Source: Chara braunii (lineage: Eukaryota > Plantae > Charophyceae). From it: a DNA stretch of 64,000 nucleotides. The notes under the pieces were generated by a model. The model was not told where the DNA came from. It worked only from the letters and a program-made list of their open reading frames with translations, and did not search any database. The DNA lies in NCBI GenBank assembly GCA_003427395.1, contig BFEA01000003.1, positions 4,239,778-4,303,777 on the forward strand, read 5' to 3'. The position numbers and the translations under genes are program-made. Below, piece after piece: positions 12,880 through 44,900 of the stretch. Numbering within the stretch: position 1 is the first letter of the stretch; each line of letters starts with the position of its first letter.

Positions 12880-12934
12880 GGCCAACTCAGTGGTACACAC
12901 AGAACTGTTGAAGTACAGACCTGAGTTCGAACTC
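12880..12934 (+). pseudogene. tRNA-derived segment inside LTR
   Basis: CTCAGTGGTA (A-box-like) and GAGTTCGAACTC (B-box-like) at tRNA spacing. Confidence 0.45.
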
Positions 12935-13024
12935 CAAGAAGTAGATAAGCGGATGATGCAATTCTGAATCACCCTGGGGCGGGGCTGGGGATATCCTAGT
13001 GCCGTGCCCACGGGCAGTCCTTGG

Positions 13025-13057
13025 TACAAGGAGTATTAGCATGACCGGTAGGCAAGG
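13025..13057 (+). pseudogene. Degenerate U6 snRNA remnant
   Basis: TACAAGGAGTATTAGCATGACCGGTAGGCAAGG versus U6 TACAGAGAAGATTAGCATGGCCCCTGCGCAAGG: 24/33 ungapped by eye, in the same relative position as the clear U6 copies in the other LTRs. Confidence 0.55.
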
Positions 13058-13151
13058 GTGGTTGTGTGCAGCTTTTGATCCTGGCCAGCAGAAGGTTGGT
13101 GTGTTCGCTGCCGTGGCCAGCGGTCACAGCTCGAGTAGGATGAGTATTAAA

Positions 13152-13191
13152 GACTACCCGGCCCGACAGCAAAGCCTTATGAAGCTTCACT
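13152..13191 (+). pseudogene. Plastid/bacterial-type 23S rRNA-like fragment
   Basis: GACTACCCGGCCCGACAGCAAAGCCTTATGAAGCTTCACT versus plastid 23S GACTACCTGCACCTGGACAGAAAGACCCTATGAAGCTTCACT. Confidence 0.5.
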
Positions 13192-14099
13192 TCTCGGTTG
13201 GGCTGCTATCGTATTAGCTGCCACTGCGCTCGCATCAAGGAAAAGAGGGGCAGGGGCACGGCCAGGGTATCTGTGGCCCCTCTAAGTGTGAGAGGATTGA
13301 GTGTGAGCATGTCAATGGGATTAGAGGGGTGATGAGCCACTGCCCGAAGTAGAGTGATGGGCCAAAGCAGGTGGCGCTGGTGGAAGCACGCAGGAACAGC
13401 AGTGTGCAACCCGTGCTTCATTCAACAGGCTGGTATAAAGGCAGATGCATCTGGGCGCGATCTCGCGCTAGATACATCTGCAGGTAAGGAAGGAGAAAGC
13501 AACCAGACGAAAGGCTATGGCGGGAATAAACTGCTATACCATGCTCGTTTCTTAATGAAACCAAGCAGGGGAAAGTGGTAGGCGGGGTTCTTGGACTGGG
13601 CGAGTGTAGGAGTAGTGTTGGTTTTGGTGCTAGTTGTGTAGGAGGTCAGTTAGAAGAAAGAAGACGTGCGAGGAGATGGTGAGAAGGGGTGGTGGGGCAA
13701 AAAATGAAAACTAGTGTAACTTTCCCGTTTCTTGATGAAAACGGGCGAGTGAAGGTGCGATTTCGGGGTTTTGGGAGTGGGCGAACGCGTTGGTAGAGGC
13801 GGATTTGAAGGAGGGGTAGTGATTTCGATGATATGATATGTAGGAGCTGCGTCTGGGGATACATACTGATGTTATGTTAAAAATGTAATGTATCTTCCCG
13901 CATTTCAGGGGAAGATTCATTCTCGTCTTACATATTCGGTGAAGCAATGTGCTGGGACATTTTCCTCCTCGAGTGCATCGTTGCTTAGGATTGTTTTCTC
14001 CTCAAGTGGTCAGACTTGTGATCAGAGTCGTTTTTTGTGTTAGTCATCTTCGTGGTGGTGGTCCTTGCTACCCATGGATTCGACCCATGGATTCGACCC

Positions 14100-14345
14100 G
14101 AGAGAGGGAGAGAGAGAGAGAGATTGTACTTACCTCAGGAGTAGCGCATCTGTCCACATTTCGGCATCCTCATACTACGCACCGCCAGGCCCGGCGAACG
14201 GTAAAGCAGAATTGGCAACACGGGATGAACCAAATGTCGAGTAACGGTGCCAAACTGCGCGCTAACCTGGTCGAGAGAGAGGCCAAGTTCATATGAGGGA
14301 AAGGCATAGGGGCGAGGCATGGGGGCCGGCGGTCAGAAGAGAAGG

Positions 14346-14382
<37 letters not shown>

Positions 14383-16210
14383 AAGAGATACTTACCTGGT
14401 CGATAGGAGTAGTAGTGCGGAGCGAGTGGAAAGTGGGGACCTCGGTGTTAAGGAGGTGATGCATGTATCTGCAGTTTAGCAGAAGATTCATTCTTATTCT
14501 GCAGTTGATGTAGGACTGGTGGGGAATCGAGCGGACGATCCGGGTCGTCCCTTCTCATTCTGCAGTTGTGTTTTTTCCCACCTCGAAGTCGCTTTCCCGC
14601 TTGTAACATGTCCTTTTGGCTCGTCATCTTCATCTTCAAGGTCGCGCTGGCCATGGTCCTTATCCTCGAGATAGCACGCATACCAGAGAGAGAAAGAGAG
14701 GGATTGCCCATCTGGTTGGCGACACTTTCACTCCTCGTAGTTTGTTAACTGCCTCGCCTGCCCCTCCCATCTCGGCATTCGGCTGCCTCCCTTGATAATG
14801 TCTTTTTGTCTTTTATCTTTCTTTTTATTTTCTCTGAATCTGGCCATATTCCCGACCAGGTGCATGGAGAACAAACGGAAGAGAAGGGGGTGGAGGGAAT
14901 CCACCTATTCGTTGTGGATTTCGATTGTAATTGTTGGGGGCCGTATTTCCCACGATCTTCCGAGAGATTCATTCTCCTTTTGCACATTTGGTGGGTAGTG
15001 GGGAGGAACTGCTATTTGCTCACCCCATTAGCAGTGCTCGTTGACTTCGTCGTGGAAGTCACATTTTGTCTGCGCCGCCGCCTGTACATCTAGAGAGAGG
15101 GAGGGAGAAAAGGAGTGTTGCGAGAGGGGCAAAGGGAACTGACAGCGGCACGGTCAGTCTGTGGCTACGTTAAGAGGGTACTGCTGATATTTGGGGTGTT
15201 GCTGCCGTCCAGCCTGGTGAATTGCCGCTTGGTGATGTTGTATGTCTGAGGAGTTGTGGCTGCGAGTAAGAGTTGCAGCAGTAGCTTGGAGCTTGGTGCT
15301 GATCTTTCTTCGGTGCTAAAGTGCTTATGCCCAAACCACTAGGAGTTGTTGTTGCCGACATCTCCAAGTTTAGGCTCACAGCGATTATGATTCCGACAAT
15401 CTACGGTCATCCTATGTCAAGTTGTCGCCTGTGACCAGGGTGGTGGTACCGTTGTAACAGTGGGACAGCCAGTATGACTGACTGAGTGTTGTGGTGTCTG
15501 TCGCATCATGCTGGATTACTGTTGCTGGAGCCAGTGGTACGGCGGTGTAATCAAAGTGGCACCTGTTGTTATACAACATCTGCTTTCTTCGATAACACTG
15601 ATTGCAGGGCACTGTTCACCACGGTGAGCCGCCATTACTAAAGTTCGAGACTTGAGCTACAGCAGTCAGTGTACGCTGCTACAGCAAGGGTAACTGATGC
15701 CACCGTATTTGCGCTGCGGCTACCAAACGCCATTAGGACGGCTGCTGCAACAACTACTTGTGCTTTCCAGAGCTACGACGACGACCTGAGCTGCTGCTGT
15801 AGATTGATTACCAAGGTTTAGTGCTGCTGTACTTCGGTCATTGGGGGGCATGCGGAGCGAACGGTACATTTGCTGTGCACATTTGGGCAGAACGGTAAGG
15901 TTGCGCCTTTGAGTTTGTTGTATGCGGGACACAGTGCTTTTATCAGAAACGATAACTGAGCAGGGCGCTGCTGCTGCCCAGAGCACTGTTCCTCATTTGC
16001 GCGTCACCACAGTGCACCATTTCCTCTTCACGACGGGGCCGCTGCTGCGAGTTGGAGTTTTGTTGGGGGACTGTTACTCTGCGCTTCGGCCGTGGCTTGG
16101 TCGTCTTCACTACTTTTTATTTGACCATCATTGCGGGGCCCTCAGGAGATTGAAGGAACCAAGACCCTCTCTCGCGAGTTGAGTCAGTCTTCTTCTTGTA
16201 TCTCTGGAGG
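14100..16210 (-). pseudogene. Decayed coding-like region, probably TE-derived; family not recognised
   Basis: Short interrupted ORFs; consensus 5' splice sites on the minus strand (AG|GTAAGT at ~14133 and ~14396). Confidence 0.25.
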
Positions 16211-16620
16211 CAGGGAACACTCAGGTATAACTTTCGTCTGACGCGTGTGATCCTTTCCCCTAACTACGATTATTCCTTTGGACTATCTGAAAACATAATT
16301 ATGAAAGGTTATTACTTTTTATTTTTGTTATATATGTCAGGACATGCTTTTGAAAAGGTTAAATTAACAAGTATATATGAGAGTCAGATACTTTGAGCGA
16401 ATTCAGACAGAATGAATTGGAGGAAGGCGGGAGGAAGATGTTTTGCATGCTTTGACCGGGTCAACCCAAGGCTGAGTTCCCCTAGGTTGGTGTGGACTCA
16501 GTGCTATGTTTATTTTTGTTTGCTGGGCTGTCTGAATGACCTTTTTTAGGATTGGGCCAGACCTGATGTTTCTTTTAATGAGTTATGGTGCATGTTTTTT
16601 CTGAGGGAATAACGACATAA

Positions 16621-17646
16621 GACTAAGCGTACCCTAGGGTTAGGGCGGCTTAGTCATGAGCCACGAATTAACTAGCCAACCAAAAGTATAAATTTTGATA
16701 TATATATTTTATTGAACTTGTACTTCTGACAGACGGGCACCCCGGGTGGGGAAAGCCAGTCAGTAAGTTAGGTAGAACTAAGGAAGAGGGAAAAAGATGA
16801 AAAGTAAAACAAAGGTAACTGGGCAGACTGAACGTACCCTAGGGTTAGGGCGGTTCAGTTATATGCTCATGATAACACTAAGGAGCAGAGAGTTACTATA
16901 AATCTGTTTTATTTTCCCTTCTAGACATGAGGCAGGATCGGAAGTTCCATTTATTATAAAGGTCCGGTCGACTGCTTAATAACAGAAGGAAAAACATAAA
17001 GTCTGTGAAAGTATTTGTACCATATTTTATGTTGTATGGCTACCTAGGTCTAACCCTAGGGTTAGGGCGGCCTAGCGATAAACCTTTGTCGTTTAAAGTA
17101 AGTTGGACGTACCCTAGGGTTAGGGCGGTCCAGCGTTCGGTGTTTATAACTGTTCAGGCAGATCAGGCACACCCTAGGGTTAGGGCAACCTGATCACATT
17201 GCCTTATGTAACTTAAACTGTTGTGGCTAGCTAAGCGTACCTTAGGGTTAGGGCGGCCTAGTGATATGCCTTTGTCGTTGATGTGCTGTAGGTTGGACGT
17301 ACCCTAGGGCTAGGGCGGTCCAACTTGTTGTTGTTTGTATTTATGTTCAGGCAAGCTAGACCTACCCACCCTGGGTAGGGATGGTCTAGAATGATGCCGT
17401 ATGTAACTTTGTTTAAAGCTGATTGGGCACACCCTAGGGTTAGGGCAGCCCAGTTCTATGCTATTTGTCGTCAGTTAGACAAAAGTCAGACGTACCCTAG
17501 GGTTAGGACGGTCTGGCCATATGCCTTATATGTACAGTTCATGTTATGTTGGGCATACCCTAGGGTTAGGGCAGTCCAAATGTGCGTACTTTACTTGTGT
17601 ACCTAGGCAGGTCAGGCATACCCTAGGGTTAGGGCCTTGTCTGACC
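16621..17646. repeat. Array of ~12 stem-loops with conserved core (T/C)ACCCTAGGGTTAGGGC and variable, self-complementary flanks
   Basis: Copies at 16621, 16826, 17044, 17102, 17161, 17230, 17291, 17356 (variant), 17421, 17485, 17549 and 17610; period ~60-67 nt from 17044 onward. Confidence 0.9.
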
Positions 17647-19454
17647 GTATGCCATAGGAAAGGGGGACGTAAAAGGGAAGGAACTAAGCGATTTAACGAA
17701 CTACTTGGACTAAATTAATGTGGGATTGTGAGAGATGTTTGGTTATGCATGCTTGTGGGCTCTCACTCTGGGGCATCTCTTTGATAGTTTAGTTGCTTTA
17801 GGTGCTCGTTGAGTGCTAAAGCTATAGGCATGTAGGATGGATGATGGGAGGTAAAACTTGGGATAAGATAGGACTGACTCTACTAGGAGTTAGGATCAGT
17901 GTTATCGCACAGCCTCATCAAGAGGTCGTACAAATTATCGCTGATTCTACCTTCCAAGTAAGTGTCAGAAGTTAGTCTCAAATATAGCTTTGCTTTGTCT
18001 TTTTGATTTCAGCTTTGTATAAATCTTGGCAGCCTCCTGCTCCTACGGGAAGCGCTGCCGAAATTTTGCAGAATTTAGAGAGTTAAATTATTTTCAACTA
18101 GGAGAAATCTGGCAATCCATCCTGTTTAGGGGATATGCTGCCGGTATTTCTTACACTTTTAAATAAACATTAGATGTTCGTTAGGAAGATAGGATTATTT
18201 CTTGATCACTCAAGCATGGCTTGGGTACTGGCCTGTGCTGCATTGCAGTGCATTGCAGGTCACCTTTATTCATATTGATTCAAGGCTTGACTATCTTCAA
18301 GCTGATCCTATAAGGATCACCTTCTGTTATCCTTAGATAACTGTTATCCTTAGATAACAGGTTTGTTTCCGACTCAACTCTAATTCACGCTTGCCACTCA
18401 ACCTAAAAGGCTTTAGCCGTGTGGTTTGATTTATTGGCTGTGTTTTTACTCGGACTTTAATTGAATGACCATTTAATAAAGATGCTGAGTACTTTATTTT
18501 GAGAGTTGCGCAAAGAGTGAGGCTTGTATGGCTAAAGCAACGGGTATGAGCACAAAGAATGGTTAAAGTTGACCCCGTGTAGTGTGTGCTCTGTTGATGT
18601 GGATTTTTGATGTGATTACATGTGTGTTCTGTGAAGTGAAGTCCAAACTTGGTTTTGCGTATGATTATATGTGTATATATATATTTGAAGGAAGCCACAC
18701 TGTGATTGTGAGAGTGATCGTCTTCTATCTCATGACTTTTATATCATGTTTCTTGTGTTCGCCCGACCCATTGAGGCCGCGCATAGTGATTAAGTAGGTG
18801 TTGCACTGAGAGAAAAAAAAAGGTCTCCTTTGACCTTTTGGTTCTTAGAGTTATTATGGTTGGACGTTGTAGTCTGTGGCAACCGTCAAAGTCAAACCCC
18901 TTGATATTTGACCGCTACGACATCTTGGAGCTGTCTACTTAACCCCTCTGCACAGGGTGCAGAAAAGGGTGTGGTCTTCAACCGCACATGGCGGTTGTCT
19001 GGCGTCGGGAGATTACTCCTCAAAGCGCCTGTCAGCCGACACTTGAGCGTCGAATGCGACCCTCGAGATTATCAAGGGCCGCGGGGCTACGAGTACTACA
19101 TAGTACCCCATCAGCGCGAGTGTTTGCGTATGCCCGCATGGTTGTTTGATATGAGGAGGCCATACGCTCGCTCGGTACTTATAAGGAAAATCCAGCGCGC
19201 GATACCTATCTGATTCTTGCTGCATAGAGTTATGGGTCGGATACTGAAGGGATTAGGAGTATTGTGGTGTGGTGGTGTTGTTTGTAGTGGTTGTTTTGTG
19301 TGTGTCCATGTGTTATGCGTGGTAAGTGTGAGTGTTGTGGCGTAACGCGTGGTGTGTAGGGTGCGTCCTAGTCGACCGACGCCGGGTCGCGCTTGGGACT
19401 TCAGCCCCCCAGTGCGTCGATTCGAGTGCGGGTTCGATTTTGGGCGTTCGATCG

Positions 19455-23882: not shown

Positions 23883-24632
23883 TGTCGACGCGAATACCCT
23901 TACATGGGTATCCGCCCTGGTTTTTGCAAATGACAGGAAGTAAGTATGGATTAAAAGTTTGAATATACCGCGCGAGTCGCGGCACTCTCTGTTGTTTATG
24001 CGGCTGATGGTTGACTGCAATAAAGAGTGTGTGGGCGCGCGGATTTGAGGCGCGCGTGATCCTTTTAGCTGTCGATGATTGAGGAGCCGGCACGACCGCC
24101 AGCCGAAATGTTTTCTGATTAAATAGGGATTAAAAAGATTATGTCTCATTGACTGATGTGCTTGTCTGTGACCTGTGCGTACGTGCGGAGGACGGCATCG
24201 ACGACAATATGACTTCTGAAGGTGTTTCGGTAGTCCAGCGCGTCGCACAGTGTCTGTTCCTTTGGGCGTCCGCCAGCGCTAGACCCAGACTTGGGCCTAG
24301 CGCTATTTAATTACGGTGTCGGACTTTTGTTAGAGAGATTCAGGGATCGAGGACGAGCGGCGATGGCGCGAAGGGCCCGACGGGGCCATCCCCCTTGGTT
24401 TTGCCATCAGCGGCGTGGGCATGAAGCCGGCAGTCGTTTTTTCGAGTTTGTTTTTTTATTATTAATGGTTGTTGTCATCATTTGACTTTATGGTTTGAAC
24501 TCTCATAAGTTAGGCACGACACTGGCCATGGTCGGCCGTCATGGCAATCGAGGACTTTGAGCGCATTTTTCTTTTTGATTGACCTGCAGGTTCTTATGTG
24601 TTTGAGAAGCTGGCGATTTCTTCCCTACCTTA

Positions 24633-24858
24633 CTGTCTTGAAAACATGGGCTGAGGAGCTCAACGTGCATGCGAGCTGGTGGGTGATTAGTCCGCGAGGC
24701 GGAAGAGACCTGGGCGGTGCGGGCCTTTTGTGGGCGTGCCGCCTGCCTGCCACAAGATTGCCGTGAGAATTTTTGAGTGTGAGTATGCGCGCTGGACCCT
24801 GCCAGGATGGTGAGTTATGCTTGGGCAGGGGCCCAGAGGCACCAAGGTGGAGGCCGCG
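24633..24858 (+). pseudogene. LSU rRNA-derived fragment (sense) in 5' LTR; same at ~33793-34015
   Basis: CTGTCTTGAAAACATGGGCTGAGGAGCTCAACGTGCATGCGAG..TTTGAGTGTGAGTATG..GGACCC..GATGGTGAGTTATGCTTGGGCAGGG..CCAGAGG..GGTGGAGGC. Confidence 0.8.
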
Positions 24859-24869
24859 GTGGAGGGTTG

Positions 24870-24975
24870 TCCACATGAAGTCCTTTCCACTTCGGTCTTC
24901 AAAGTTCTCAGTGGGATATTTGTTACTACCGCCGAGAGCCGCGACTGGCCCAGTCCGCGGAGGCCTACTCTGAGC
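24870..24975 (-). pseudogene. LSU rRNA-derived fragment (antisense) in 5' LTR; same at ~34030-34130
   Basis: CACATGAAGTCCTTTCCACTTCGGTCTTCAAAGTTCTCAGTGGGATATTTGTTACTACC is the reverse complement of a conserved LSU segment. Confidence 0.8.
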
Positions 24976-25096
24976 TCTGCAACAGGCTGCGCCACGGCCG
25001 TCTGTCTGCGTAAGGGCTGGCTATTGGAAGCCCGAGGCGGTGTGGGTTCTGCTTGAACAGAACAAGGGGGAGTGGCCGTGGCGGAGCCGGCCCATA

Positions 25097-25143
25097 CAAG
25101 CTGATCGTTGGACTTGGGCATAGGGGCGACAGGCAAATCGGCC
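25097..25143 (+). pseudogene. Further LSU rRNA-derived fragment (sense)
   Basis: GATCGTTGGACTTGGGCATAGGGGCGACAGGCAAATCG versus LSU TTCGTC.GACTTGGGTATAGGGGCGAAAGACTAATCG. Confidence 0.7.
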
Positions 25144-25445
25144 TTCCGATACTCAGCCACTTTCAGACTGCCCACGGACTGTGCTGGGCGTCGCGGGGCC
25201 AATGGCATATCGCCTGGGCAGCGGGTCAGGCCGGTATGCGTTAGGCAGCCACAGGTGGAGCGGGGGAAAGAGGGCCGGCTAGGAAAACAGCGCAGGGGGA
25301 GAGGGTGAAAGCGGAGTGAACCTGGACGCACGTCGCGCCGGGTGTGCACGGGAGAAGGGGGCGAAGGGCTGGTTAGCCCGTCCCGTAGTTGGGTCCGCCC
25401 GACGGCTGCCTGTTGCGGTGGCGAAGGGGCGCCCACCAGCTATAA

Positions 25446-25538
25446 GTTCTTCGGGACATCCGTTAAAATTGGAACGATACAGATAAGATTAGCATGGCCC
25501 CTGCGCAAGGATAACGCGCATAAATCGGGGCGGGGTCC
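25446..25538 (+). ncRNA. U6: U6 snRNA-derived copy in 5' LTR (variant or pseudogene)
   Basis: GTTCTTCGGGACATCCGTTAAAATTGGAACGATACAGATAAGATTAGCATGGCCCCTGCGCAAGGATAACGCGCATAAATCG..GGTCC is close to plant U6; no USE/TATA at canonical spacing and no oligo-T end. Confidence 0.9.
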
Positions 25539-27047
25539 GACGGNNNNNNNNNNNNNNNNNNNNNNNNNNNNNNNNNNNNNNNNNNNNNNNNNNNNNNNNN
25601 NNNNNNNNNNNNNNNNNNNNNNNNNNNNNNNNNNNNNNNNNNNNNNNNGCGCATAAATCGGGGCGGGGTCCGACGGCCAAACACTTCTCTGATCCTTGAC
25701 ACTTACGTGCCGTCGGACCGGCACTGCGCGGTATCGGGGGACAGTCAGAGTTGCCGTTGATATTTTGCCTTTCTTTCTGCTGTGCATGTCGGTCGAACCG
25801 ACGAGGGACAGCGCTACAGGAAGGCGGAGTAGGCCAGCCCCAACGGAGGAACGAGGAGTGAACCTGGATGCGGGCCGCGTCAGGTGCTTGCAAAGCGAAC
25901 GAAGCCATGGTGGAGCTCAGCAGGAGCATGGCGGAGCAGGGAGAGGAGTTTTCGCCCGATCCGTAATAGAATCGGGCAAAACAAAAGTTGAGGCAGGGGT
26001 TTCTGGCTATGGCGAGCCTGATCGTGTGGCTGGAAGGGCATGAGAATTAGCAAATCGCGAGTTAGTTGAAGGAGGGAAAACGCGAAGATGGTGGTGGGGG
26101 GATATGTGAGGCATGCGGGAGAAAGAAAGTGTTTAGTTCAATCGATTCCCAATGGAATCGGGCAGGAGAAACGGTTATTCAGTACCTTGAGGATAGGCAA
26201 AACTGACTCTGAAGTTAGTTCTAGCTAAAAGTTAGTAAGACTAATGTTAGTAGAGAAATGGGTTGCGCGAGCCATGGCGGAAGGAGGGAATGATGAGAGG
26301 GTAGAAAGCTTGATTTTGGCTGTTTCTTGATGGGAACGGGTACGGGAGGACTCTAACTAAGGGTTTTTCGGGATTGCGATCCCGATTTTGTAGTTAGTCT
26401 GGGTAGTAAGTTAGTAAAATAGAAGCTAGATGAGAAGGCTGGTGCGTGGAGGCGCCGGGAAAGGTGGATCGAGACATTACTTGAGCCTTAATAAAATCGA
26501 GGGAGGGGAGATTCGTTCCCGGGGTTTTGAGTCCGGGCGAATCGATTAGTAGTGTTAGATTTCGGAGTTAGTAAGAGGAGTGATTAATAGAGGGGTTAGG
26601 AGTTGCGCGGTATAAGGGTGATGATTAGCGGGGAAAGAGACTTCAAGATGGCGATGTATTTTTCCACGATCAAGTGCAGATTCATTCGATTTTGCTAAGT
26701 TTATGCCACGGGAATAGCATGAAGACAACGTGAGGCTAATTGTGCAGCTGGAAACTCGTCGTGTGATCGGCGTCGAAGAAGGAGCCAGACAAGCCGTGCG
26801 CAGACGGGGTTGCTACGAACTAAGTCATTGCATGAGTGCGAGAGGGGAGTGGGCAATGGGCAGAAAAGAGATACGCACCTATCCTGTCGTAGGGGCACGC
26901 GAGAGGTATGGCTGGCGCACTCGGCCGGAGCGGCCTATTGGAAGCTTCATTGTATCATTCTGTGACGAGGTGGTCCAACTCCCGCGTGACGCGGCCGGGA
27001 GGGTCTCGCGCTGCCCCGTGCGGTGTCGGACCGATGCGCTCGACAGG

Positions 27048-27060
27048 TGGCGCCGTTGCC
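27048..27060 (+). promoter_or_regulatory. Primer-binding site complementary to the 3' end of tRNA-Asp
   Basis: TGGCGCCGTTGCC lies 2 nt after the LTR end; it is the PBS type known from Athila-like Ty3 elements. Confidence 0.9.
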
Positions 27061-28373
27061 TCGGATAACGGTTGCCTACCGTTGTCCCTAGTGGAACGAC
27101 ATCCGGGTATTGGAAGCGAGAAAATAGACAAATGAGAAGTTTTCGTTAGGACTATATGAGCGACGAGCTGATATCTCGACTACTGATTGGAAGGGTCGTA
27201 GAATTGAGAGATCCTTAAAAATCGGGTCTAGATTTGAGGCAGGTTAATGATTTAGGCGAGGTGACCACTTCTGCCTTACGGATTGGTTTGGGCAGAATGG
27301 TTGATAGCAGTCAGTGCTGGATAAAAAGCGTGAAGTGAGGGTTGGTTAGATGATGTGGTTTTGATTGATGTGACCTGATTTGGATTAATATGGTATGAAT
27401 GACTCGAGGGTGATAAGTGTTTTGATTTTGCGTTCACCGACTTTGACTAGCATGATGGTATTTGAGATAGGTAACCCGTCTGATTTGATAGTTAGCAGGC
27501 CTGGGCAATGCTTTGCGTGTTTGGCGTGGCTAAGGTTAAGTATGGCTATTGTGAGAGTTAACCCTATGATGTACCATTTTTGACTACCATAAAAGTCGTC
27601 TGAGTAATTGGGGAAGCATCGTAATACGGTTGCATCAGAATGGGGCTAAGGATGAGTGAAATAATATTCCTCTGTTAAGAGTTGAAGGTATAGACCCTCT
27701 CTTAGGTGTTAGGTTAGAAATCTTCTGTGCGCTTTGAGGAGAAGTCGGTTAAGGAAAGTTGAAGGATATTACTGGCATGGACTTAGATGTTTGAGTCTGG
27801 ATTCTAAGCGGTTGCTTTGCTACGAGACGTAGTGAGTCTGGGTAATACCCTCTTTACATGAAGGACATCTAATCCTAGAGGGAGTTGGAGTAGCAGTGGA
27901 AGAGCTAACACTTAGACTATTTCGCTCACCTTTAATGGAGCGGTGGGTAGTAATTGATGTTGACCTTCGCCTGAACCGTTCCAGGTTGGACCATCCACTT
28001 AGGAAGATAAAGGTTTGAGGTCTTTTGTTTTGAGGATGTTACTTTGAGTTATATATTGGACTCATCTATGGATGTCAGACCTTGTAAACCTAGTTTACGC
28101 CTAATTATGTGAAGTTGTATGTTTAAGTAGACATCCGTTTCAGGAGTATTTCGTGTGGGTTATTTTATCAGGATTATACTTGGGGTTTTATTAGTTTGTA
28201 GAAATTTATATGAATGTGTCTAGTCTAGCCCTTGGCTCATGGTTGGTCATTAAGCCTGTACTTTTGGATCGCTCTTCCAAGAGGGGTAGGGATTGTCAGT
28301 TTAATAACGGAAGGCGCATGCTGGACGTTTGTCTGTGATGGGCAGAACCCAGACAAAGCAAAGGTAACTCAGG

Positions 28374-29048
28374 ATGCCTTATGCACGGGAAGACCCGTGG
28401 ATGCTCGGGCCAATTGAGAAAGAGGGAGGGCTCGAGGTGTCTTTGCCCAGGCGGGTCAGAGCAGGAGACTACCTCTCTTCATGGTGGGGCATGTCGATGG
28501 GCACAAACATCTTTGTCTGGATCGAGTCGGGGTTTGATGATGAGTGGGAGTGTGCGATTGTAAGGGTGACGATGTACGCCTCGCCCTCATTTTGGGTCGA
28601 GCATGGGATAGAGTTGACGCTTGGGCATGGAAACCTGCTTGCTAGGCCTCTGAGGGTAGCAGAGGCAGCTACAACAAAGTGGGCGAGGGAAGTGTCCCGT
28701 GACGGGGAAGAGCAAGTGCTAACCCGTGTAGAGGTTAAGTGCGCTGGAGAGTTCGGGCTTCCATCGGCTCCGCTACGAGTAATCCTGCCTGGGTTTCTCA
28801 TAGAGAAGAGTTTTGGTGGACAGGCGAGGGTAGAGGCGGCAGCTGAAGCGGCTTTGAGGGCGCTAAGATGGAAATATGAGCGCTACACGTGCGAATTGAT
28901 ATATGGGTTGTATTTAGACTTGAAGTGTTCACTCCCTAGTCAGTGGCTTAGGAACATGGCCAGCACAGTGGACGTATATACCAGTACTCATGACCCAGAT
29001 GAAGGGGGTGGAGACTGGGAGGAGATTCGGGCAGCAGTGGACCGATAG
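28374..29048 (+). CDS. 224-aa extra ORF upstream of gag; paralog P1 of unrecognised TE-borne family
   Basis: Uninterrupted ATG-TAG ORF; LEVSLP..SSWWGMSMGTNIFVW and LRVILPGFLIEKSFGG match P2-P4. Confidence 0.65.
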   Translation: MPYAREDPWMLGPIEKEGGLEVSLPRRVRAGDYLSSWWGMSMGTNIFVWIESGFDDEWECAIVRVTMYASPSFWVEHGIELTLGHGNLLARPLRVAEAATTKWAREVSRDGEEQVLTRVEVKCAGEFGLPSAPLRVILPGFLIEKSFGGQARVEAAAEAALRALRWKYERYTCELIYGLYLDLKCSLPSQWLRNMASTVDVYTSTHDPDEGGGDWEEIRAAVDR

Positions 29049-29290
29049 GGGATGTCTTCTTTCTCCACTAAATGCGCTTCTTTTGACTTGGTTGTGGTCG
29101 TCTCTCTACCCATTACCGCAGTTATAAAGGTGAGCGTCTGGGTAACTAGGGGTTGAGGCTTGATTGCACAAGTAAAAGGGTAGATATTGTGATTTAAGTG
29201 TTAGCAGGTTGTCTTTGTCTGCCTGAGTTTACTTGAATCACTTTTTGATGATCTATTGCCCGCTATGCGTATCAGGTTGTTGCCAGCATC

Positions 29291-30720
29291 ATGGCGGAAG
29301 AAAGCGGCTTCGCCAAAATCCTGCTTTGGAGGAATTTTCGTGCCTCATGAAGGTGCTGCTGCACGAAGTGTTGCAGGAGTCAATGCTCCCAGATCTGTGC
29401 GCCCTGCTGTTCCAAGGAAGGAACCTGTCTAGCTTTTTGCGCGACTTTTAGGATTTTAGCCTTATGAAGACGTGGGACAAGAAGGCGATGTGGCACATGT
29501 TCCTCTTGTTCGTTTGTGAAGGACTAAGTGAGGAGGTATATGCCCTCAAGCAGAAGGCGAAGACGTGGGATGAGTTGGAGAGTTCCTTAAGGCTAAGATT
29601 CTCGGAAGATGGAATAGAAGGCCAACGTGGGGAATGCTCTGTGCCACCAGTTGCGGGTGCACCACCACAGGCAGAGTTAAGTGGGTTACAAAGATAAGTA
29701 GGGGCATTGGAGGAGAGGTTGGTACGGCTGGAAGAGGCCAGGAAATGCAAGCAGAAGGTTTCAGAAGATTCCCCAAGTAAGCCGACTGGTCAGGGTGAAA
29801 GAGGAGTAGAGAAGGATGACCAAGAGTAACCCCTCTAGATAGAGGCCCCAAAGAGGCGTGTCGGTGTTCAGGCGAGAGACAAAGACGAAGGATCTATTGA
29901 AATAAAGGAGGAGAAGGATGCTAATGTGGCCCTGCCTGTTATTGCGCCAGATCCAAAGAGGGGGCTCATTAACGTGGAAGCATCCTCAGCTGCGGGTCGG
30001 AAGAGGCAAAAGAGTGGGTGGTGGCCAAAGCATTGGGTAAATGTGGTATGTGATTGTTGGGGAAAGACTGACCGCACCCCCCAAGGAAGTAAAGAGAAGG
30101 GTGTGGCGGGAGAAAAAGGGAAGCTTGAACCTCCCAAGTTGACAAAGGCGCAGCGGAAGGCAAGGAACCTCGCTCAAGGCGGTCAGGGCACCGAAAAAGG
30201 GCAGAGTTCGCGGCAGGGAGCGATTACCCCGTGAGAGTTGGAAAGCGAGGTGAGACCAAGCGAGCCTCCTCTGATCGAGCAGGCACTACTTGGGTTGTGG
30301 GCGCCGGATAACCGAATGAACTTGTGGCCGACACAGAATCCTTATATGCTCTGGGCGCAAAGTGATTACATGGGCCCTTGGTTCAACATGGTGCCCCATG
30401 GACCCCCGCCAGTCCAAATCCACCCTGTCGGACCGTTGTGGCCACCGATACAAAAAGTTTTGCAGGACAGTATGACATGGGGAAGGGGCCAAAGGCAAGC
30501 AGTTGGAAGGGGCCGCGGAGATGGGGCGTGGCAATGCGGGTCGCAGAAATGGCGGGCGTGGCAATACGGGCCGTGGAGATGGTGGACGCGCCAATGGAGG
30601 TCGTGGGAGTGACAAGCAAGGCGCCGAGGGTCGCGATGGGAGCCAGCGGAACCATAAAGGGGCTCAAAGAAGAAAGGGACATGACGGTGCTAAATAAGAT
30701 GATCCTTAGAGTGAGCTAGG
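29291..30720 (+). pseudogene. gag: Degenerate gag-like ORF
   Basis: FQGRNLSSFLRDF*..KTWDELESSLRLRF resembles the retrotransposon gag capsid pattern (FxG..FL..; TW.EL...L..RF); GR-rich C-terminus; several stops and frameshifts. Confidence 0.55.
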
Positions 30721-31779
30721 TGATCCGGGGTGCGGAGAGGGTAGATGAGACGGCTAGGGCAGGGGAAAGTATAGCAGGGTGTAATGGGGATTCACCCTAA
30801 CGCCTGGGTTGGGAAGTTTCTCTCAGTCGTCTGCCCTGGACTCTTGGATTCGTGTTGGCAAAGTCTAGGTGTACATGTATTGATCTGGAAACTGGGGTAG
30901 CAGGCTAACCGTTGCGTGACCCTAACCCCGTACTAATTGGTAAAGGCTAGTTGCGTATTATGTGAGTCACGACGGACATATACTCTGATGTGTATATGTG
31001 TATAGGCTAGCTCCGGGGAGGGGTTTCGCAATAATGGTCCGGTAAAGTAACTTAGGTTGTAGATAGCTCAGCCATATAGGTGAAACCAGGGGGGCAATGA
31101 GTGAGTGGAGACTGGTTCGCCTATACATTAGTAGGATTAAAGCTTCTTGTATATAGAGACGGAGTTAGATACGTGCATATCTAGGTGTAGTCACAACTAT
31201 CTTATCCATCTGTACATAAGCAGGATGTAGTACTGGATGAATCTATTGTTCCCTCCTTTGGTGTGATTTAGATGGTTGTGTCCAGATGTGTGATATGTTG
31301 GCGTGTTGGGGTAGACTTGCGAGTTTTGAGCTTTTGTGTATGTTTGGGTATATTCCGAGGTACTCGTGTCTTCAAGACATGGGTTACTCAGCAGAGTGGG
31401 ACGTGAGGGTTGGGTACCTATGTTGTTTTTGAGAGAGACATATTAATTTGGTGTACATGTTGAGTTGAGACCCTATGAGGTTTGGTTTTTGTGACGATCA
31501 CTATCACTCTCACTTGTGTGGTTTTACCCTGATGAATGTTGGCTTTGCGTGAAAAATATATGAATGTGTGACCTGTTAAGCTGCCTGCTCCTCAGTATAC
31601 TCGTGCGACCTGCTCACGGGCAGCTGATGGGGCAGAGTATAAGGGGAGAAAGTGCAGTCCGTTTGTGAAACGTTGTGAGAAATTTTGAAAGATTTACGAG
31701 TCTTTGAGACTCGGGTGCTTCACCATGCCGGTTGTTGATTGCTTAAGTTGTAACGAGGACCTATAAGATGGTCTCTCAG

Positions 31780-31918
31780 TGATGTTTTGTTCTATAAAGA
31801 GACCCCCTTGATTTTTTTAGAAGGGGGTATTGTGTGTTATGATGAGACCCTTCAGATTTTTGGAGGAGGGGATGTTTTGTTCTATGATGAGACCCCCTTG
31901 GATTTTTGAAAAAGCGGA
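31780..31918. repeat. ~45-50-bp tandem repeat, 3 copies, in the 3' internal region
   Basis: GATGTTTTGTTCTAT.A.GAGACCCC.T..ATTTTT..A.G is repeated three times. Confidence 0.7.
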
Positions 31919-33022
31919 TGGTTCTATTATTGGAGGACTCACCTTCAAAGGTGAGTAAACTGATTTATGGCATGGTAAGTTGTCTGATGAGTGATAAAGC
32001 CTGACGAAAAGGGTCATATTTGTTTGGAATGCTTGAGAAGGTCGCAATGAGTGCAGGGCGAGAGATGTCTCAGGATGGGTGGCTGCTGGCTCTGATCAGG
32101 TCAGGGGCCACGACCTTGTGGACCTAGTGGTGATTTTGTTTGTGAGCATGCAAAGGATGTCATGCCTTTATGGGAGAGTTGGTGAATGCCTTCAGACCCC
32201 TACGTAATCGCGCAGTGGGCCCGTGATTTTGTTTTGCGACGCTCCGTCTAACCACTTGTGCTAGTTCTGGGACATATTGAGGAATACCAAGCTAAACGGT
32301 AAAGGTTAGTACCTCCAGGGTGTAACCCCAGGGGATGGCTGCGAGCCGGCGCAACCTGGCTGCGAGACCGCAGGGTAAGAGTTTAAGGGGAGTTGCCCGC
32401 CCCAGGGAAATTACTCCGTGGGATAGTGAAGATTGAGGTTTTGGGGAATCTGGATTGAATGCTTATCAGGAGATAACATATCGTTGCGTAACCAACGAGG
32501 GTACTGCCGCTAAAATAACAATGCGGTGGGCCGTAGTCCTTGTCCGATCAGCCAGACTATGGTGGGCCAAGATAGAGACCTAGCCTTTCTGTACTAGACT
32601 ACAAAAAGAGCTGAGTGAATATTAAGTATACATATATACGTATGTGTATTTGATTGCGAGAATTTTTTTGAGAAGGAAGACCAGAGTGCATTCGAAGGTC
32701 TCGGTAAGGGCCCGCGTCGCTAGTTTTTGCCAGGACTAGGGGCACCCAACGAGAAGCCGAAGGTTGTCTAGGAGCGGGGGAAAAGGACGATTGGGAAGGT
32801 CTTTGGAACTTATGCTGTCAGCATCCTAATGCCCGGGCGGAAAGGACCTGGGTTACAAGCCTGACATTATATAGTTGCAGAGACATGGTTTGATGGAGGC
32901 CTCCACCCTGAGTCTGTCGGCTACTCGGATTGGTCCCTCCTTTCGTCAGCATCTTGGGTAATCCGATAGCTTTTCGATTTTTGCGAAGCGACGGGGACAT
33001 CGCTTAATATGGTCCGGTAAGT

Positions 33023-36000
33023 TGTCGACGCGAGTACCCTTACAAGGGTATCCGCCCTTGTTTTTGCAAATGACACGAAGTCAGTCTGGATTAAAAGTTT
33101 GAGTATACCGCGCGAGCCGCGACAGTCTCTGTTGTTTATGCGGCTGATGGTTGACTAGAATAAAGAGTGTATGGGCGCGCGGATTTGAGGCGCGCGTGAT
33201 CCTTTTAGCTGTCGATGATTGAGGAACCCGCGCAACCGCCGGCCGAAATTTTTTCTGATTGAATAGGGATTAAAAAGATTATGTCTCGTTGACTGATGTG
33301 CTTGTCTGTGACCTGTGCGTACGTGTGGAGGACGGCATCGACGACAATATGACTTCTGAAGGTGTTTCGGTAGTCTGGCGCGTCGCACAGTGTCTGTTCC
33401 TTTGGGCGTCCGCCAACGCTAGACCCAGACTTGGGCCTAGCGCTATTTAGTTACGGTGTCGGACTTTCGTAAGAGAGATTCAAGGATCGAGGAGAAGCGG
33501 CGATGGCGCGGGAACATCGGGGTGGCGCAAAGGGCTCGACGGGGCCATCCCCCTTGGTTTTGCCATCAGCGGCATCAGGACGAAGCCGACAGTCGTTTCT
33601 TCGAGTTTGTTTTTTTATTATTAATGGTTCTTGTCATCATTTGACTTTATGGTTTGACCTCTCATAAGTTAGGCACGACACCGACCGCGGTTGGCCGTCG
33701 CGGCAGTCGGCGACTTTGAGCGCGCTTTTCTTTTTGATTGACCTGCAGGTTCTTATGTGTTTGAGAAGCTGGCGATTTCTTCCCTACCTTACTGTCTTGA
33801 AAACATGGGCCGGGGAGCTCAACGTGCATGCGAGTTGGTGGGTGATTAGTCCGCGAGGTGAAAGAGACCTGGGCGGTGCGGGCCTTTTGTGGGCGTGCCA
33901 CCCGCCTGCCGCAAGCCTGCCATGAGAATTTTCGAGTGTGAGTATGCCTGCTGGACCCTGCCGGGATGGTGAGTTATGCTTAGGCAGGGGCCCCAGAGGC
34001 ACCAGGGTGGAGGCCGTGGTGGAGGGTTGTCCACTGGAAGTCCTTTCCACTTCGGTCTTCGAAGTTCTCAGTGGGATATTTGTTACTACCGCCGAGAGCC
34101 GCGACGGGCCCAGTCCGCAGAGGCCTACCCGAGCTTTGCAGCAGGCTGCGCCGCGACCGACTGTCTGCGTAAGGGCTGGCTATTGGAAGCCCGAGGCGGT
34201 AGTGGGTTCTGCTTGAACAGAACGAGGGGGAGTGGCCGTGGCGGAGCTGGCCCATACAAGCCGATCGCTGGACTTGGGCATAGAGGCGACAGACAAATCG
34301 GCCTTCCGATACTCAGCCACTTTCAGACTATCGCCCACGGACTGTGCTGGGCGTTGCGGGGCCAATGGCATATCGCCTGGGCAGCGGGTCCAAACGTTAC
34401 ACGTTAGGCAGCCATAGGCGGAGCGGGGGAAAGAGGGCCGGCTAGGAAAACAGCACAGGGGGAGAAGGTGAAAGCAGAGTGAACCCGGACGCAGGTCGCG
34501 CCGGGTGTGCATGGGAGAAGGGGGCGAAGGGCTGGTTGGCCCGTCCCGTAGTTGGGTCCGCCCGACTGCTGCCTGTTGCGGTGGCCAAGAGGCGCCCACC
34601 GGCTTTAAGTCCTTCGGGACATCCGTTAAAATTGGAACGATACAGATAAGATTAGCATGGCCCCTGCGCAAGGATAACGCGCATAAATCGGGGCGGGGTC
34701 CGACGGCCAAACACTTCTCTGATCCTTGACACTTACGTGCCGTCGGACCGGCACTGCGCGGTATCGGGGGACAATCAGAGTTGTCGTTGATATTTTGCCT
34801 TTCTTTCTGCTGTGCGTGTCGGTCGAACCGACGAGGGACAACGCTACGAGAAGGCGGAGTAGGCCTGCCCCAACGGAGGAACGAGGAGTGAACCTGGACG
34901 CGGGCCGTGCCAGGTGCTTGCAAAGTGAACGAAGCCATGGCGGAGCTCAGAAGGAGCATGGCGGAGCAGGGAGAGGAGTTCTCGCCCGATCCGTGATGGA
35001 ATCGGGCGAAACAAAAGTCGAGGCTGGGGTTTCTGGCTATGGCGAGCCTGATCGTGTGGCTGGAAGGGCATGGGAATTAGCAAATCGCGAGTTAGTTGAA
35101 GGAGGGAAAACGCGAAGATGGTGGTGGGGGATATGCGAGGAATGCGAAAGAAAGAGAGTGTTTAGTTCAATCGATTCCCAACGGAATCGGGCGGGAGAAA
35201 TGGTTATTCAGTACCTTGAGGATGGGCGAAACTAACTCTGAAGTTAGTTCTAACTAAAAGTTAGTAAGACTAGTGTAAGTAGAGAAATGGGCTGCGCGAG
35301 CCATGGCGGAAGGAGGGAATGATGAGAGGGTAGAAAGCTTGATCTTGGCTGTTTCTTGATGGGAACGGGTACAGGAGGACTCTAACTAAGGGTTTTTCGA
35401 GATTGCGATCCCGATTTTGTAGTTAGTCCGGGTAGTAAGTTAGTAAAATAGAAGCTAGATGAGAAGGCTGGTGCGTGGAGACGCCGGGAAAGGTGGATAT
35501 GGCGGGAGTAAAAGATCGAGACATTACTTGAGTCTTAATGAAATCGAGGGAGGGGAGATTCGTTCCCGGGGTTTTGAGTCCGGGCGAATCGATTAGTAGT
35601 GTTAGATTTCGGAGTAAGTAAGAGGAGTGATTAATAGAGGGGTTAAGAGCTGCGCGGTATGAAGGTGATGATTAGTAGGGAGAGGGACTCCAAGATGGCG
35701 ACGTATTCTTCCATGATCAAGTGCAGATTCATTCGATTTTGCTAAGTTTATACCACGGGAATAGCATGAAGACAACGTGAGGCTAATCGTGCAGCTGGAA
35801 ACTCGTCGTGTGATCGGCGTCGGAGAAGGAGCCGGACAAGCCGTGTGCAGACGGGGTTGCTACGAACTAAGTTATTGCATGAGTGCGAGAGAGGAGTGGG
35901 CAACGGGCAGAAAAGAGATACGCACATATCCTGTCGTAGGGGCACGCGAGAGGTATGGCTGGCGCACTCGGTCAGAGCGGCCTATTGGAAGCTCCATTGT

Positions 36001-36093
36001 ATCATTTCCATGACGAGGTGGTCCAACTCCTGCGTGACGCGGCCGGGAGGGTCCCGCGATGCCCCGTGCGGTGCCGGACCAATGCGCTCAACA
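33023..36093 (+). repeat. 3' LTR
   Basis: TGTCGA...TCAACA; direct repeat of 23883-27045. Confidence 0.92.
34609..34701 (+). ncRNA. U6: U6 snRNA-derived copy in 3' LTR (variant or pseudogene)
   Basis: GTCCTTCGGGAC 5' hairpin, ACAGATA in place of ACAGAGA, AGC triad and ISL GGCCCCTGCGCAAGGAT. Confidence 0.9.
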
Positions 36094-36576: not shown

Positions 36577-37600
36577 CTAAGTCCGGACAACAACCCCTAT
36601 CCTAGGAAAGTGGGCGTCAGTGGTGTCAATCTCCTCCTCCGAGTCAGAACTCTCGCTCTCGGAGTCAACCCAATCGGGCTCCCAAGCCCCCTCCTCGTTG
36701 TCTCTGCCCCACCCCTCGTCGTCGAACTCGTCCTCGACGCGGTACGGGGCCTGACCTATGGCCTGATAATACTGTGTCAGCTGGTGGCTGTATATCAGAG
36801 GTCGTCCGGCGTCCTCGCTCCACCAGCCACCCAGTCGTTTGAGAAGAGACTCCCTATAGAGGTCACGTACTCGGGGCCTGCTCGGAGCTCTCGGTCCAAC
36901 CAGTCCCAGACGCACAGAGCCTGAGGCCAGTCGTCGTCCACCGAGCGGATCAGCTCAATAAGCTGGACCCTCTTGTCCATCCAACGAAGTCCCCCGGTCG
37001 CAAGGAAATAGTACAGGTAGACGAGGTCCCAATACCCCCTGGCAAGGACCTCAAGCTCTCGAAACGCTAAGTACGCCTCGACTACCCCACCTATGCCCCC
37101 AAAGATAGAGTCTACAATACAACCGGGTATTATCGCCCTCAGACATGTGCTGCCGTATAGGAAAAATTGGTCTCGAGCTATCACAAGTTCGCTCCCTATA
37201 CTGAGAGGAGGTCGCCCGTGGAATAACGTCCACTCGTAGCGCGCGTCGTCCACTCGAAACGCGGCGACCTCGTCCCGCAGACATCGTAGGGCCCTGCCGA
37301 TCGCGTCGCTCACACCCGTCGTCACAAAACTGAAGGCAGCCTCTTTGGCCGCGTCCTGCCCTAAGTACAGATAACCTCTCACAAGGCCCCTCTCCTGACC
37401 AGGTCTGACCTCCCTATGAGTCCAAAGCCATGTGCCGGGGGATAAGACGACGGATCTCAACCCAAACTGTCTGACGATGTGATCTCCACCCCAGGCAGGG
37501 ATCGTAAGCTCAACTAGATCTCCCTCTAACAGCTCGGCGGCTCTACGTCCCAGGCGTGACTAGCCTCGTAGACCTCGATCGGCGCAAACGGCCACATCCG
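36577..37600 (-). pseudogene. Paralog P3 of unrecognised TE-borne family (frameshifted)
   Basis: ORFs 36795-37460 and 36577-36915: LRAIIPGCIVDSIFGG, DKRVQLIELIRSV, VWDWLDRELRAGPEYVTSIGSLFS and an acidic W-rich tail. Confidence 0.6.
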
Positions 37601-41986: not shown

Positions 41987-44900
41987 CACACCTAGAACCA
42001 CGCCTAGAACCACGCCTAGAACCACGCCTAAAACCACACCTAAAACCACGCCTAGAACCATGCCTAAAACAACGCCTAAAACAACGCCTAGAACGACACC
42101 TAAAACCACGCCTAGAACCACGCCTAAAACCACGCCTAAAACCACGCTTAAAACCATGCCTAAAACCAAGCCTAAGCCACGCCTAAAACCACACCCAAAA
42201 CCCACGCCTAAAACCACGCCTAAAACCACGCCTAAAACCACGCCTAAAACCATGCCTAAAACTACGCCTTAAACCACGCTAAAACAAAGCTACAAACCAC
42301 GTTAAAACAACGCTAAAACCACGCTAAAACAACCCCAAAACCACGCTACAACCACACTAAACCACGCTAAAACCACGCCTAGAACCACGCTAAAACCAGG
42401 CTAAAACCACCCCTAAAACCACGCCTAAAACCATGCCAAAACCACGCCACAACCACGCCTAAAACCACGCCTAAAACCACGCCTAGAACCACGCACACCT
42501 AAAACCATGCCTAGAACCACGCCTAAAACCACGCCTAAAACCATGCCTAGAACCACACCTAGAACCACGCCTAGAACCACGCCTAGAACCACACCTAAAA
42601 TCCGCCTAGAACAACGCCTAAACCACGCCTAGAACCACGCATAAAACAACGCCTAAAACCACGCCTCAAACCACGCCTAAAACCACGCCTAAAACCATGC
42701 CTAAAACCATGCGTAGAACCACGCCTAGAACCACGCCTAGAACCACGCCTACAACCAGGCCTGCAACCAGGCCTACAACCAGGCCTACAACCAGGGCAAC
42801 AACCAGGCCTAAACCACGCTAAAACCACGCTAAAACCACGCTAAAACCACGCCTAAACCACGCCTAAACCACACCAAAACCACGCCAAAACCACGCCAAA
42901 ACCACGCCAAAACCACGCCTAGAACCACGCCTAAAACCACGCCACGCCAAGAACCACGCCTAGAACCACGCCTAGAACCACGCCTAAAACCACGCGTAGA
43001 ACCACGCGTAGAACCACGCCTAAACCACGCCTAAAACCACGCCTAAAACCACGCCTAAAACCACGCCTAGAACCACGCCCAAAAACCACGCCCAAAACCA
43101 TGCCTAAAACCACGCCTAAAACCATGCCTAGAACCACGCCTAGAACCACGCCTAAAACCACGCCTAGAACCACGCCTAAAACCACGCCTAGAACCACGCC
43201 TAAACCACGCTTAGCACCATGCCTAAAACCTCGCCTAAAACCACGCCTAAAACCACGCCTAGAACCATGCCTAGAACCACACCTAGAACCACCCCTAAAA
43301 CCACGCCTAAAACAACTCCTAAAACCACGCCTAAAACCACGCCTAAAACCACGCCAAAACCACGCCTAAAACCACGCCTAGAACCACGCCTAAAACCACG
43401 CCTAGAACCACGCCTAGAACCACAATTGGAACCATGCCTAAAACCACGCCAAAACCACGCCTAAACCACACCTAAAACCACGCCTACAACCACGCCTACA
43501 ACCACGCCTACAACGTCGCCTACAACGACGCCTAAAACCACGCCTAAAACCACGCCGAACCACGCCGAGAACCACGCCTAAAACCACGCCTAAAACCACG
43601 CCTAGAACCACGCCTAGAACCACACCTAGAACCACGTCAGAACCACGCCTAGAACCACGCCTAAAACCACGCCTAAAACCACGCCTNNNNNNNNNNNNNN
43701 NNNNNNNNNNNNNNNNNNNNNNNNNNNNNNNNNNNNNNNNNNNNNNNNNNNNNNNNNNNNNNNNNNNNNNNNNNNNNNNNNNNNNNNNNNNNNNNNNNNN
43801 NNNNNNNNNNNNNNNNNNNNNNNNNNNNNNNNNNNNNNNNNNNNNNNNNNNNNNNNNNNNNNNNNNNNNNNNNNNNNNNNNNNNNNNNNNNNNNNNNNNN
43901 NNNNNNNNNNNNNNNNNNNNNNNNNNNNNNNNNNNNNNNNNNNNNNNNNNNNNNNNNNNNNNNNNNNNNNNNNNNNNNNNNNNNNNNNNNNNNNNNNNNN
44001 NNNNNNNNNNNNNNNNNNNNNNNNNNNNNNNNNNNNNNNNNNNNNNNNNNNNNNNNNNNNNNNNNNNNNNNNNNNNNNNNNNNNNNNNNNNNNNNNNNNN
44101 NNNNNNNNNNNNNNNNNNNNNNNNNNNNNNNNNNNNNNNNNNNNNNNNNNNNNNNNNNNNNNNNNNNNNNNNNNNNNNNNNNNNNNNNNNNNNNNNNNNN
44201 NNNNNNNNNNNNNNNNNNNNNNNNNNNNNNNNNNNNNNNNNNNNNNNNNNNNNNNNNNNNNNNNNNNNNNNNNNNNNNNNNNNNNNNNNNNNNNNNNNNN
44301 NNNNNNNNNNNNNNNNNNNNNNNNNNNNNNNNNNNNNNNNNNNNNNNNNNNNNNNNNNNNNNNNNNNNNNNNNNNNNNNNNNNNNNNNNNNNNNNNNNNN
44401 NNNNNNNNNNNNNNNNNNNNNNNNNNNNNNNNNNNNNNNNNNNNNNNNNNNNNNNNNNNNNNNNNNNNNNNNNNNNNNNNNNNNNNNNNNNNNNNNNNNN
44501 NNNNNNNNNNNNNNNNNNNNNNNNNNNNNNNNNNNNNNNNNNNNNNNNNNNNNNNNNNNNNNNNNNNNNNNNNNNNNNNNNNCGCCTAGAACCACGCCTA
44601 AAACCACGCCTAAACCCATGCCTAAACCACGCCTAAAACCACGCCTAAAACCACGCCTAGAACCACGCCTAGAACCACGCCTAAAACCATGCCTAAAACC
44701 ACGCCTAGAACCATGCCTAAACCACACCTAAAACCACGCCTAAAACCATGCCTAAAACCACGCCTAGAACCACGCATAAACCACGCCTAAACCACGCCTA
44801 AAACCAGGCCTAAAACCACACCTAAGACCACGCCGTGGTTTTAGCGTAGTTTTAGCGTGGTTCTAACCGTGGTTTTAGTGTGGTTTTAGCGTGGTTTTAG

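Follow-up and report, generated by a model that had tools for sequence, protein, structure and literature searches.

A row of covarying GGGU-tipped hairpins in a truncated giant LTR from a Ty3/gypsy family of Chara braunii

The hairpin row and its units

The window, by which we mean the whole 64-kb stretch of Chara braunii DNA analysed here, contains a hairpin row, 12 units of which span 16621-17646; in all it comprises 11 canonical units and 1-3 variants (12-14 in total). Each unit is formed by an outer stem, a small internal loop, a short inner stem and a tip. A sequence-only reading of this DNA had counted about 12 units in the interval, and 12 are confirmed. Nine other loci, L001-L009, were taken from the DNA around homologues of the open reading frame (ORF) at 28374-29045 and are referred to as relatives. 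The features of the locus are as follows.

10970..19438 (end about 19440), + strand: giant LTR belonging to a Ty3/gypsy family of Chara, without its last ~350 bp; from its TGTCG start on, it is colinear with LTRs of 7-8 kb in L001-L008
16120..16204, + strand: conserved block at the onset of the high-copy part of the LTR, where DNA contig depth goes from ~70 to ~5000
16206..16230, + strand: conserved purine-rich landmark, then a splice-donor-like GT (16225); precedes the array in L001, L002, L003, L005-L007 and L009
16471..16502, + strand: probable degenerate unit, which folds at z -2.6 and is missed by the covariance model
16621..16655, + strand: unit 1, flanks similar to those of a late unit of the L003 array
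16726..16764, + strand: probable variant unit, GGGT loop on a CCCC/GGGG inner stem (z -1.9, weak)
16826..16860, + strand: unit 2, flanks matching an L001/L003 unit that has a different core
17044..17325, + strand: units 3-7 (starts 17044, 17102, 17161, 17230, 17291), period ~60 nt
17356..17389, + strand: unit 8, variant core with a possible 4-bp inner stem around GGGT (E 0.37; z -3.8)
17422..17646, + strand: units 9-12 (starts 17422, 17485, 17549, 17610), located by core and covariance model
16632, 16837, 17054, 17112, 17172, 17240, 17302, 17432, 17495, 17558, 17621: core starts, from a core search at no more than one mismatch
18014..18085, + strand: conserved hairpin that closes the array region, present in all relatives
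23883..36093, + strand: related element with short (3.2-kb) LTRs at 23883-27045 and 33023-36093, the array region absent from both

The 14-nt core consists of CCCTA, the loop GGGT and TAGGG, and it contains a 10-bp palindrome. There are 11 copies at zero or one mismatch, and no further copy within one mismatch is found elsewhere in the 64-kb window. The head of the units had been described as invariant; it is near-invariant, with eight exact cores and one change in each of the other three. A change in the core, at 17508, occurs in the window copy alone. A covariance model recovers the 11 units at E below 1e-9, as it must by construction, and recovers the variant twelfth weakly at 17351-17394 (E 0.37). 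The region of this variant, unit 8, is 3 nt shorter in most related copies. The description of a regular array with T-rich spacers of about 25-35 nt holds for the last ten units, where the spacers are 26-34 nt long with 35-50% T, but the first two spacers measure 170 and 183 nt and contain additional hairpins, so that even spacing, with a period of ~60 nt, is confined to units 3-12. In units 5, 9 and 11 the internal loop is changed on both sides together, from G/G to A/A, which could be a purine-purine pair or simply the shared loss of two CpGs.

The carrier LTR and a short-LTR relative

The array sits on the + strand inside a truncated, decayed giant LTR, because 10970-19438 is colinear with the LTRs of the relatives and stops ~350 bp short. 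No LTR end was found downstream of 19438 in the window, and no internal region of the array-bearing copy is present there; this copy is one truncated LTR. The mobile element that had earlier been presumed to carry the hairpins is thereby identified as belonging to a Ty3/gypsy family of Chara that shows OTA-like traits. In the relatives, the block corresponding to 16120-16204 lies 240-250 nt ahead of the next landmark. When DNA contigs are matched at 85% likeness, their summed depth is 3,000-11,000 over the array as against 6-9 for single pieces, a figure that is not a copy number; many related copies must nevertheless exist.

Several smaller features lie in the long LTR. A fragment resembling LSU rRNA occupies 11929-12064. 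No place upstream of the array is richer in RNA than a very high-copy 35-nt motif at 14965-15000, which has loose ends on both sides; variants of it occur at 13913, 14484, 26678 and 35725, and the motif is a candidate initiator-like element. Antisense splice-donor-like sites are seen at ~14130 and ~14390 of the window, at ~19360 of L002 and at ~6700 of L003; behind the arrays of L002, L003 and L005 such a site lies in or beside a small hairpin.

The related element at 23883-36093 is a member of the same family and provides a natural control: both of its LTRs jump from ~2300 to ~6870 of the L007 LTR, and the array and its landmarks (~4.5 kb) are gone. This single array-free copy does not prove that the array is dispensable, because a deletion would reach both LTRs in one round of reverse transcription. 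Copies of U6 snRNA are found inside both short LTRs (25446-25546 and 34609-34686). Close homologues of this element's upstream ORF (28374-29045) were found in Chara braunii alone, and a distant paralogue lies at 36798-37559 on the - strand. Searches with it gave no Pfam match, no fold match (from a low-confidence model) and no recognisable RNA-binding fold. Its product is a candidate partner of the array. The ORF-like pieces that adjoin the array, searched individually, have no homologue and no Pfam match.

Pairing and covariation of the outer stems

The array is structured, and its outer stems are unit-specific and covary well above controls. The nine outer-arm pairs listed by the sequence-only reading are all in place, and its claim that outer stems differ between units yet still pair is borne out: with their own arms, 63 of 77 cells are Watson-Crick, as against 42.7 +/- 4.5 when the 3' arms are permuted among units. 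One unit entered this count one base out of register, the effect of which is conservative. Only 2 of 200,000 permutations reach the observed value, which is no strict probability since the units are kin. In all, 88% of outer-stem cells pair, and six of the eight outer pairs change on both sides. The covariation score, counted among the 11 window units, is 0.368, compared with 0.231 after shuffling (0 of 500 reach it) and at most 0.165 in slid registers; kinship among units inflates such tests, and the slid controls retain that kinship. The inner stem shows no covariation among the same 11 units. These results support a selected single-strand structure inside a mobile element.

An Rfam covariance-model search with an E-value limit of 1 gave no match on the array, and no description of it was found in a literature search of incomplete coverage. 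Pattern scans of metagenome and viral contigs also gave no match, which is uninformative for a eukaryotic repeat.

Related elements

Eight of the relatives (L001-L008) are gag-only and L009 codes for pol. The relatives have LTRs of 7-8 kb, a primer site and an internal part of ~6 kb, which gives an element of ~20 kb. Paired LTRs bounded by TG...CA and a tRNA primer site are seen in L001, L003 and L005-L007; we take the primer site to resemble tRNA-Asp. The internal part encodes the upstream ORF and a capsid domain, and a CCHC knuckle is present in L005. The capsid domain, modelled at pLDDT 90, aligns to dArc1 with a TM score of 0.72 (E 0.05) and matches Atlas gag clusters, and the region has no Pfam match. 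No pol-like ORF was seen in L001, L005 or L007. L009 is a distant relative, tied to the family by LTR blocks and the upstream ORF. It has LTRs of ~11 kb and encodes protease, RT and integrase in gypsy order, its RT being closest to Ty3 in the PDB. Parts of its two LTRs, 2700-4611 and 28450-30361, are identical over 1912 comparable nt, which points either to a very young element or to assembly collapse. The L009 array is near-tandem, with a 73-nt period.

Arrays and tips of the relatives

In the relatives, arrays of two-tier hairpins with other tips occupy this place in the LTR, bounded by the same pair of landmarks. A GGGT-type array is found in none of the nine loci, and the covariance model, which is tip-specific, does not recover their arrays. 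The tips are as follows.

L001 and L002: CTA-TAAGTT-TAG
L005-L007: CCA-TAAGAT-TGG
L003: TTC-TAAGAT-GAA
L008: mosaic tips
L009: TGTC-tipped row

The tip is uniform within a subfamily and different between subfamilies. Flanks, meaning outer stem plus spacer, were compared for the 61 units of L001-L008: in 58 of them the flanks find their best match in an array with another core and not in their own array, and the match scores mostly exceed the shuffled maximum. This test offered more outside candidates than own-array ones and was repeated pair by pair at equal size, giving 8/11 and 8/10 for L001 against L005, 7/8 and 6/8 for L002 against L007, and a weaker result for L003. The positional mates follow one another in colinear order, in LTRs that are 83-88% alike elsewhere. 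Core identity behaves the opposite way: between L001 and L005 it is 0.49 to the positional mate as against 0.87-0.89 to the best own-array unit, and over the pairwise tests it is ~0.5 to the mate as against 0.8-0.95. Because flanks match positional mates while cores match their own array, the tips were replaced together at old positions, and the outer stems are inherited by position.

The window array is more distant from the arrays of the relatives (69-78%). Within it, 17030-17320 resembles 17219-17513 at 70%; unit 2, and perhaps unit 1, retain flanks of L003 units. For nine of the 11 window units the best match is another unit of the same array, so this array expanded largely by local amplification. 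The earlier argument that simple tandem duplication does not yield such compensatory change is thus partly wrong, as much of this array arose by duplication.

Folding strand and transcripts

Folding as + strand RNA had been proposed from an excess of G-T mismatches. In a strand-neutral count the bias is indeed 7 G-T to 1 A-C in the window, but it falls to 27 to 17 when relatives are included (p=0.17), and mismatches common to at least two loci number 8 G-T and 7 A-C in a rough count for which some registers are imperfect. The whole row folds at -245 kcal/mol (z -2.3) on the + strand and at -223 kcal/mol (z -7.6, 20 shuffles) on the - strand, and the palindromic cores pair over long range in the global fold. 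The strand argument from G-T bias is hence weak, because the overall count is non-significant and the minus strand folds at least as significantly against shuffles. All LTR sequence on the coding strand, be it U3, R or U5, is present in genomic RNA at least once. The position of the array on the gag-coding strand of related elements is a better argument for + strand RNA.

Poly(A) RNA reads over the region are sparse and come from other copies, with only 4 of 2203 reads at least 99% alike to the window copy. They run equally in both directions, and their depth tracks DNA depth (rho 0.87). The window copy looks silent. No spliced joint, including any at the donor-like GT at 16225, is among those listed in the RNA reads, whose coverage is low. 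The reads show no start or end piles at the array, which is a weak test with oligo-dT data.

Proposed function and alternatives

The arrays constitute an undescribed family of LTR hairpin arrays, of which the window carries the GGGU-tipped variant. The reading that we favour, with moderate confidence, is that the array forms a multivalent recognition strip in genomic RNA, specific to the subfamily and read by an element-encoded protein for packaging or export. This keeps the multivalent scaffold of the earlier note as the best reading, now with a covarying array placed in an LTR and with subfamily tips; its function is predicted. Each unit would fold locally and expose its tip and internal loop to a single molecule of an element-encoded protein, which might be Gag, through its zinc knuckle, or the product of the upstream ORF. 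Ten to fifteen such sites would provide avidity and so mark the full-length RNA for packaging or nuclear export. The stems would supply geometry, and the tip and internal loop identity. Short-tract conversion or amplification of units would carry new tip variants along the row, and these would be retained where they suit the partner.

Support for the recognition strip comes from the covariation within the array, from its presence at the same LTR position in gag-only and pol-coding relatives, each with its own tip, from flanks kept by position while cores are common within arrays, and from the capsid domain and CCHC knuckle of relatives. The internal loops persist, though repair to a perfect palindrome would erase them, and this too would argue for the strip. 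Counting against it are the element at 23883-36093, which has no array in either LTR, the lack of a recognisable RNA-binding fold in the upstream ORF, and the apparent silence of the window copy.

Other explanations have to be weighed against the same evidence. The hairpins may act in an ssDNA or RNA/DNA step of reverse transcription, where very long strong-stop DNA, pausing or strand transfer would be involved. The near-equal G-T and A-C mismatches kept in at least two loci and the good folding of the minus strand fit such a role, as do LTRs of 7-11 kb alongside a short-LTR element that manages without the array. We nevertheless judge it unlikely, as it leaves the uniform, subfamily-specific tip unexplained. 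Alternatively, the cores may be duplex DNA sites for an element-encoded regulator of the VANC kind or for a host factor, with the stems secondary. Repeats of a family-specific motif in a non-coding, promoter-side region, together with an element ORF, parallel that case (PMC5735166), and the palindrome in the window core suits it. A duplex site, however, requires no paired, covarying outer stems, and the tips of other subfamilies are non-palindromic, which makes this a distinctly unlikely reading. We give the same low standing to a neutral by-product, in which unit duplication and template-switch mutation keep stems paired without selection. Template switching is able to create and repair stems (PMC8794818), duplications are evident and the G-T bias is unclear. 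Against neutrality, LTRs with no more than 69-78% likeness, and a far relative too, have retained the geometry, the internal loop and the position; cores at old positions were also swapped as a set, whereas sequence 10 nt from them was not.

The TTAGGG tracts of the window array could recruit telomere-repeat proteins or form quadruplexes, or its palindrome could dimerise two RNAs. The ten TTAGGG and 31 G-tracts of this array and the long-range pairing of its cores invite the idea, but the homologous arrays have no TTAGGG and no palindrome, and for that reason neither a telomere mimic nor a G-quadruplex switch can be the function common to the family; this reading is very unlikely. A telomeric repeat or telo-box array was rejected as a description for the same lack of TTAGGG and because the repeat is not kept across the family. 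Since tips change together among relatives while stems stay by position, the telomere-like, palindromic look is particular to the window subfamily. Least credible is a CRISPR-like or small-RNA precursor cut to unit-length RNAs. The regular ~60-nt period across ten units is what such a precursor would show, but the spacers are related and inherited by position instead of acquired, the oligo-dT reads, for what that test is worth, do not pile up at unit ends, and Rfam offers no match. The CRISPR-like repeat-spacer transcript of the earlier note is accordingly not supported, and a CRISPR array proper was rejected on its differing stems, its related, inherited spacers and its setting in a eukaryotic LTR.

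Beyond the recognition strip itself, we tentatively raise the rather doubtful possibility of a rewritable identity code in RNA: a subfamily tip on a common stem row would be read by an element protein and rewritten through conversion of the core only, and autonomous elements and their gag-only parasites could thereby compete for the packaging machinery or divide it between them. In grass pararetroviruses, non-coding signals are homogenised between autonomous and non-autonomous partners via region-wide recombination (PMC5491270). A hairpin row with natural tip variants offers matched and mismatched RNA-protein pairs suited to asking how an element picks out its own RNA, as well as how non-autonomous elements exploit autonomous ones. 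Tip replacement at old positions is an unusual mode of concerted evolution, and orthogonal hairpin-protein pairs could serve as RNA tags.

Comparison with known systems

Export elements known in retroelement RNA include the RRE, the RTE of IAP and the MTE of MusD. Like these and retroviral psi, the array is a structured cis element of a retroelement that lies behind a donor-like site (PMC12786077); psi, RRE, RTE and MTE consist either of one complex fold or of a few unlike hairpins, whereas here like units stand in a row. The export of LTR-retrotransposon RNA in plants has not been the subject of direct study (PMC12786077). The alphavirus packaging signal is a series of GGG-tipped stem-loops, of which number, structure and tip all matter (PMC5869531). 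The Chara array resembles it as a row of stem-loops each with a G-rich tip. It differs in that capsid reads the alphavirus signal, which belongs to a coding region in an RNA virus, while the array described here is non-coding, lies in an LTR, has a fixed two-tier geometry and no homology to that signal, and has a function that is predicted. Coronavirus repetitive structural motifs, in SL5 and the Embecovirus signal, have repeated, lineage-specific loops (PMC8206606). Repeated hairpins with a conserved lineage-specific loop are found here as well, but the viral motifs number 2-8 copies; here an LTR of a retrotransposon holds 8-15, and tips have been exchanged at orthologous positions. If the array functions at all, it would act much as the alphavirus and coronavirus signals do, but since it is not homologous to them and its role is predicted, it is not classed with them.

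Among mobile elements, the targets of VANC in VANDAL elements resemble the array as family-specific motif repeats in non-coding sequence for which the element encodes a candidate partner (PMC5735166). They are duplex DNA sites of a DNA transposon and have no covarying hairpins, unlike the LTR hairpins of Chara. Most of the relatives have gag without pol, as do TR-GAG elements in the part of their description drawn on here (PMC4350172), where these are under 4 kb with a single ORF; the relatives are ~20 kb long and have an extra upstream ORF. In having very long LTRs, arrays of repeats and an additional ORF at the 5' end, the relatives are like the OTA (Athila/Tat/Ogre) non-chromoviruses, going by the sections cited (PMC6317226). 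Those sections give OTA LTRs of ~5 kb, as against 7-11 kb here, and their arrays are tandem repeats, with covarying hairpins not described in the cited portions of either source (PMC4350172, PMC6317226).

Other features of the window

Just left of the LTR, 10151-10345 and 10661-10850 form a MITE-like inverted repeat of ~200 nt at 70% identity. Further downstream, a 12-bp telomere-like satellite with many strand flips extends over 41987-58500.
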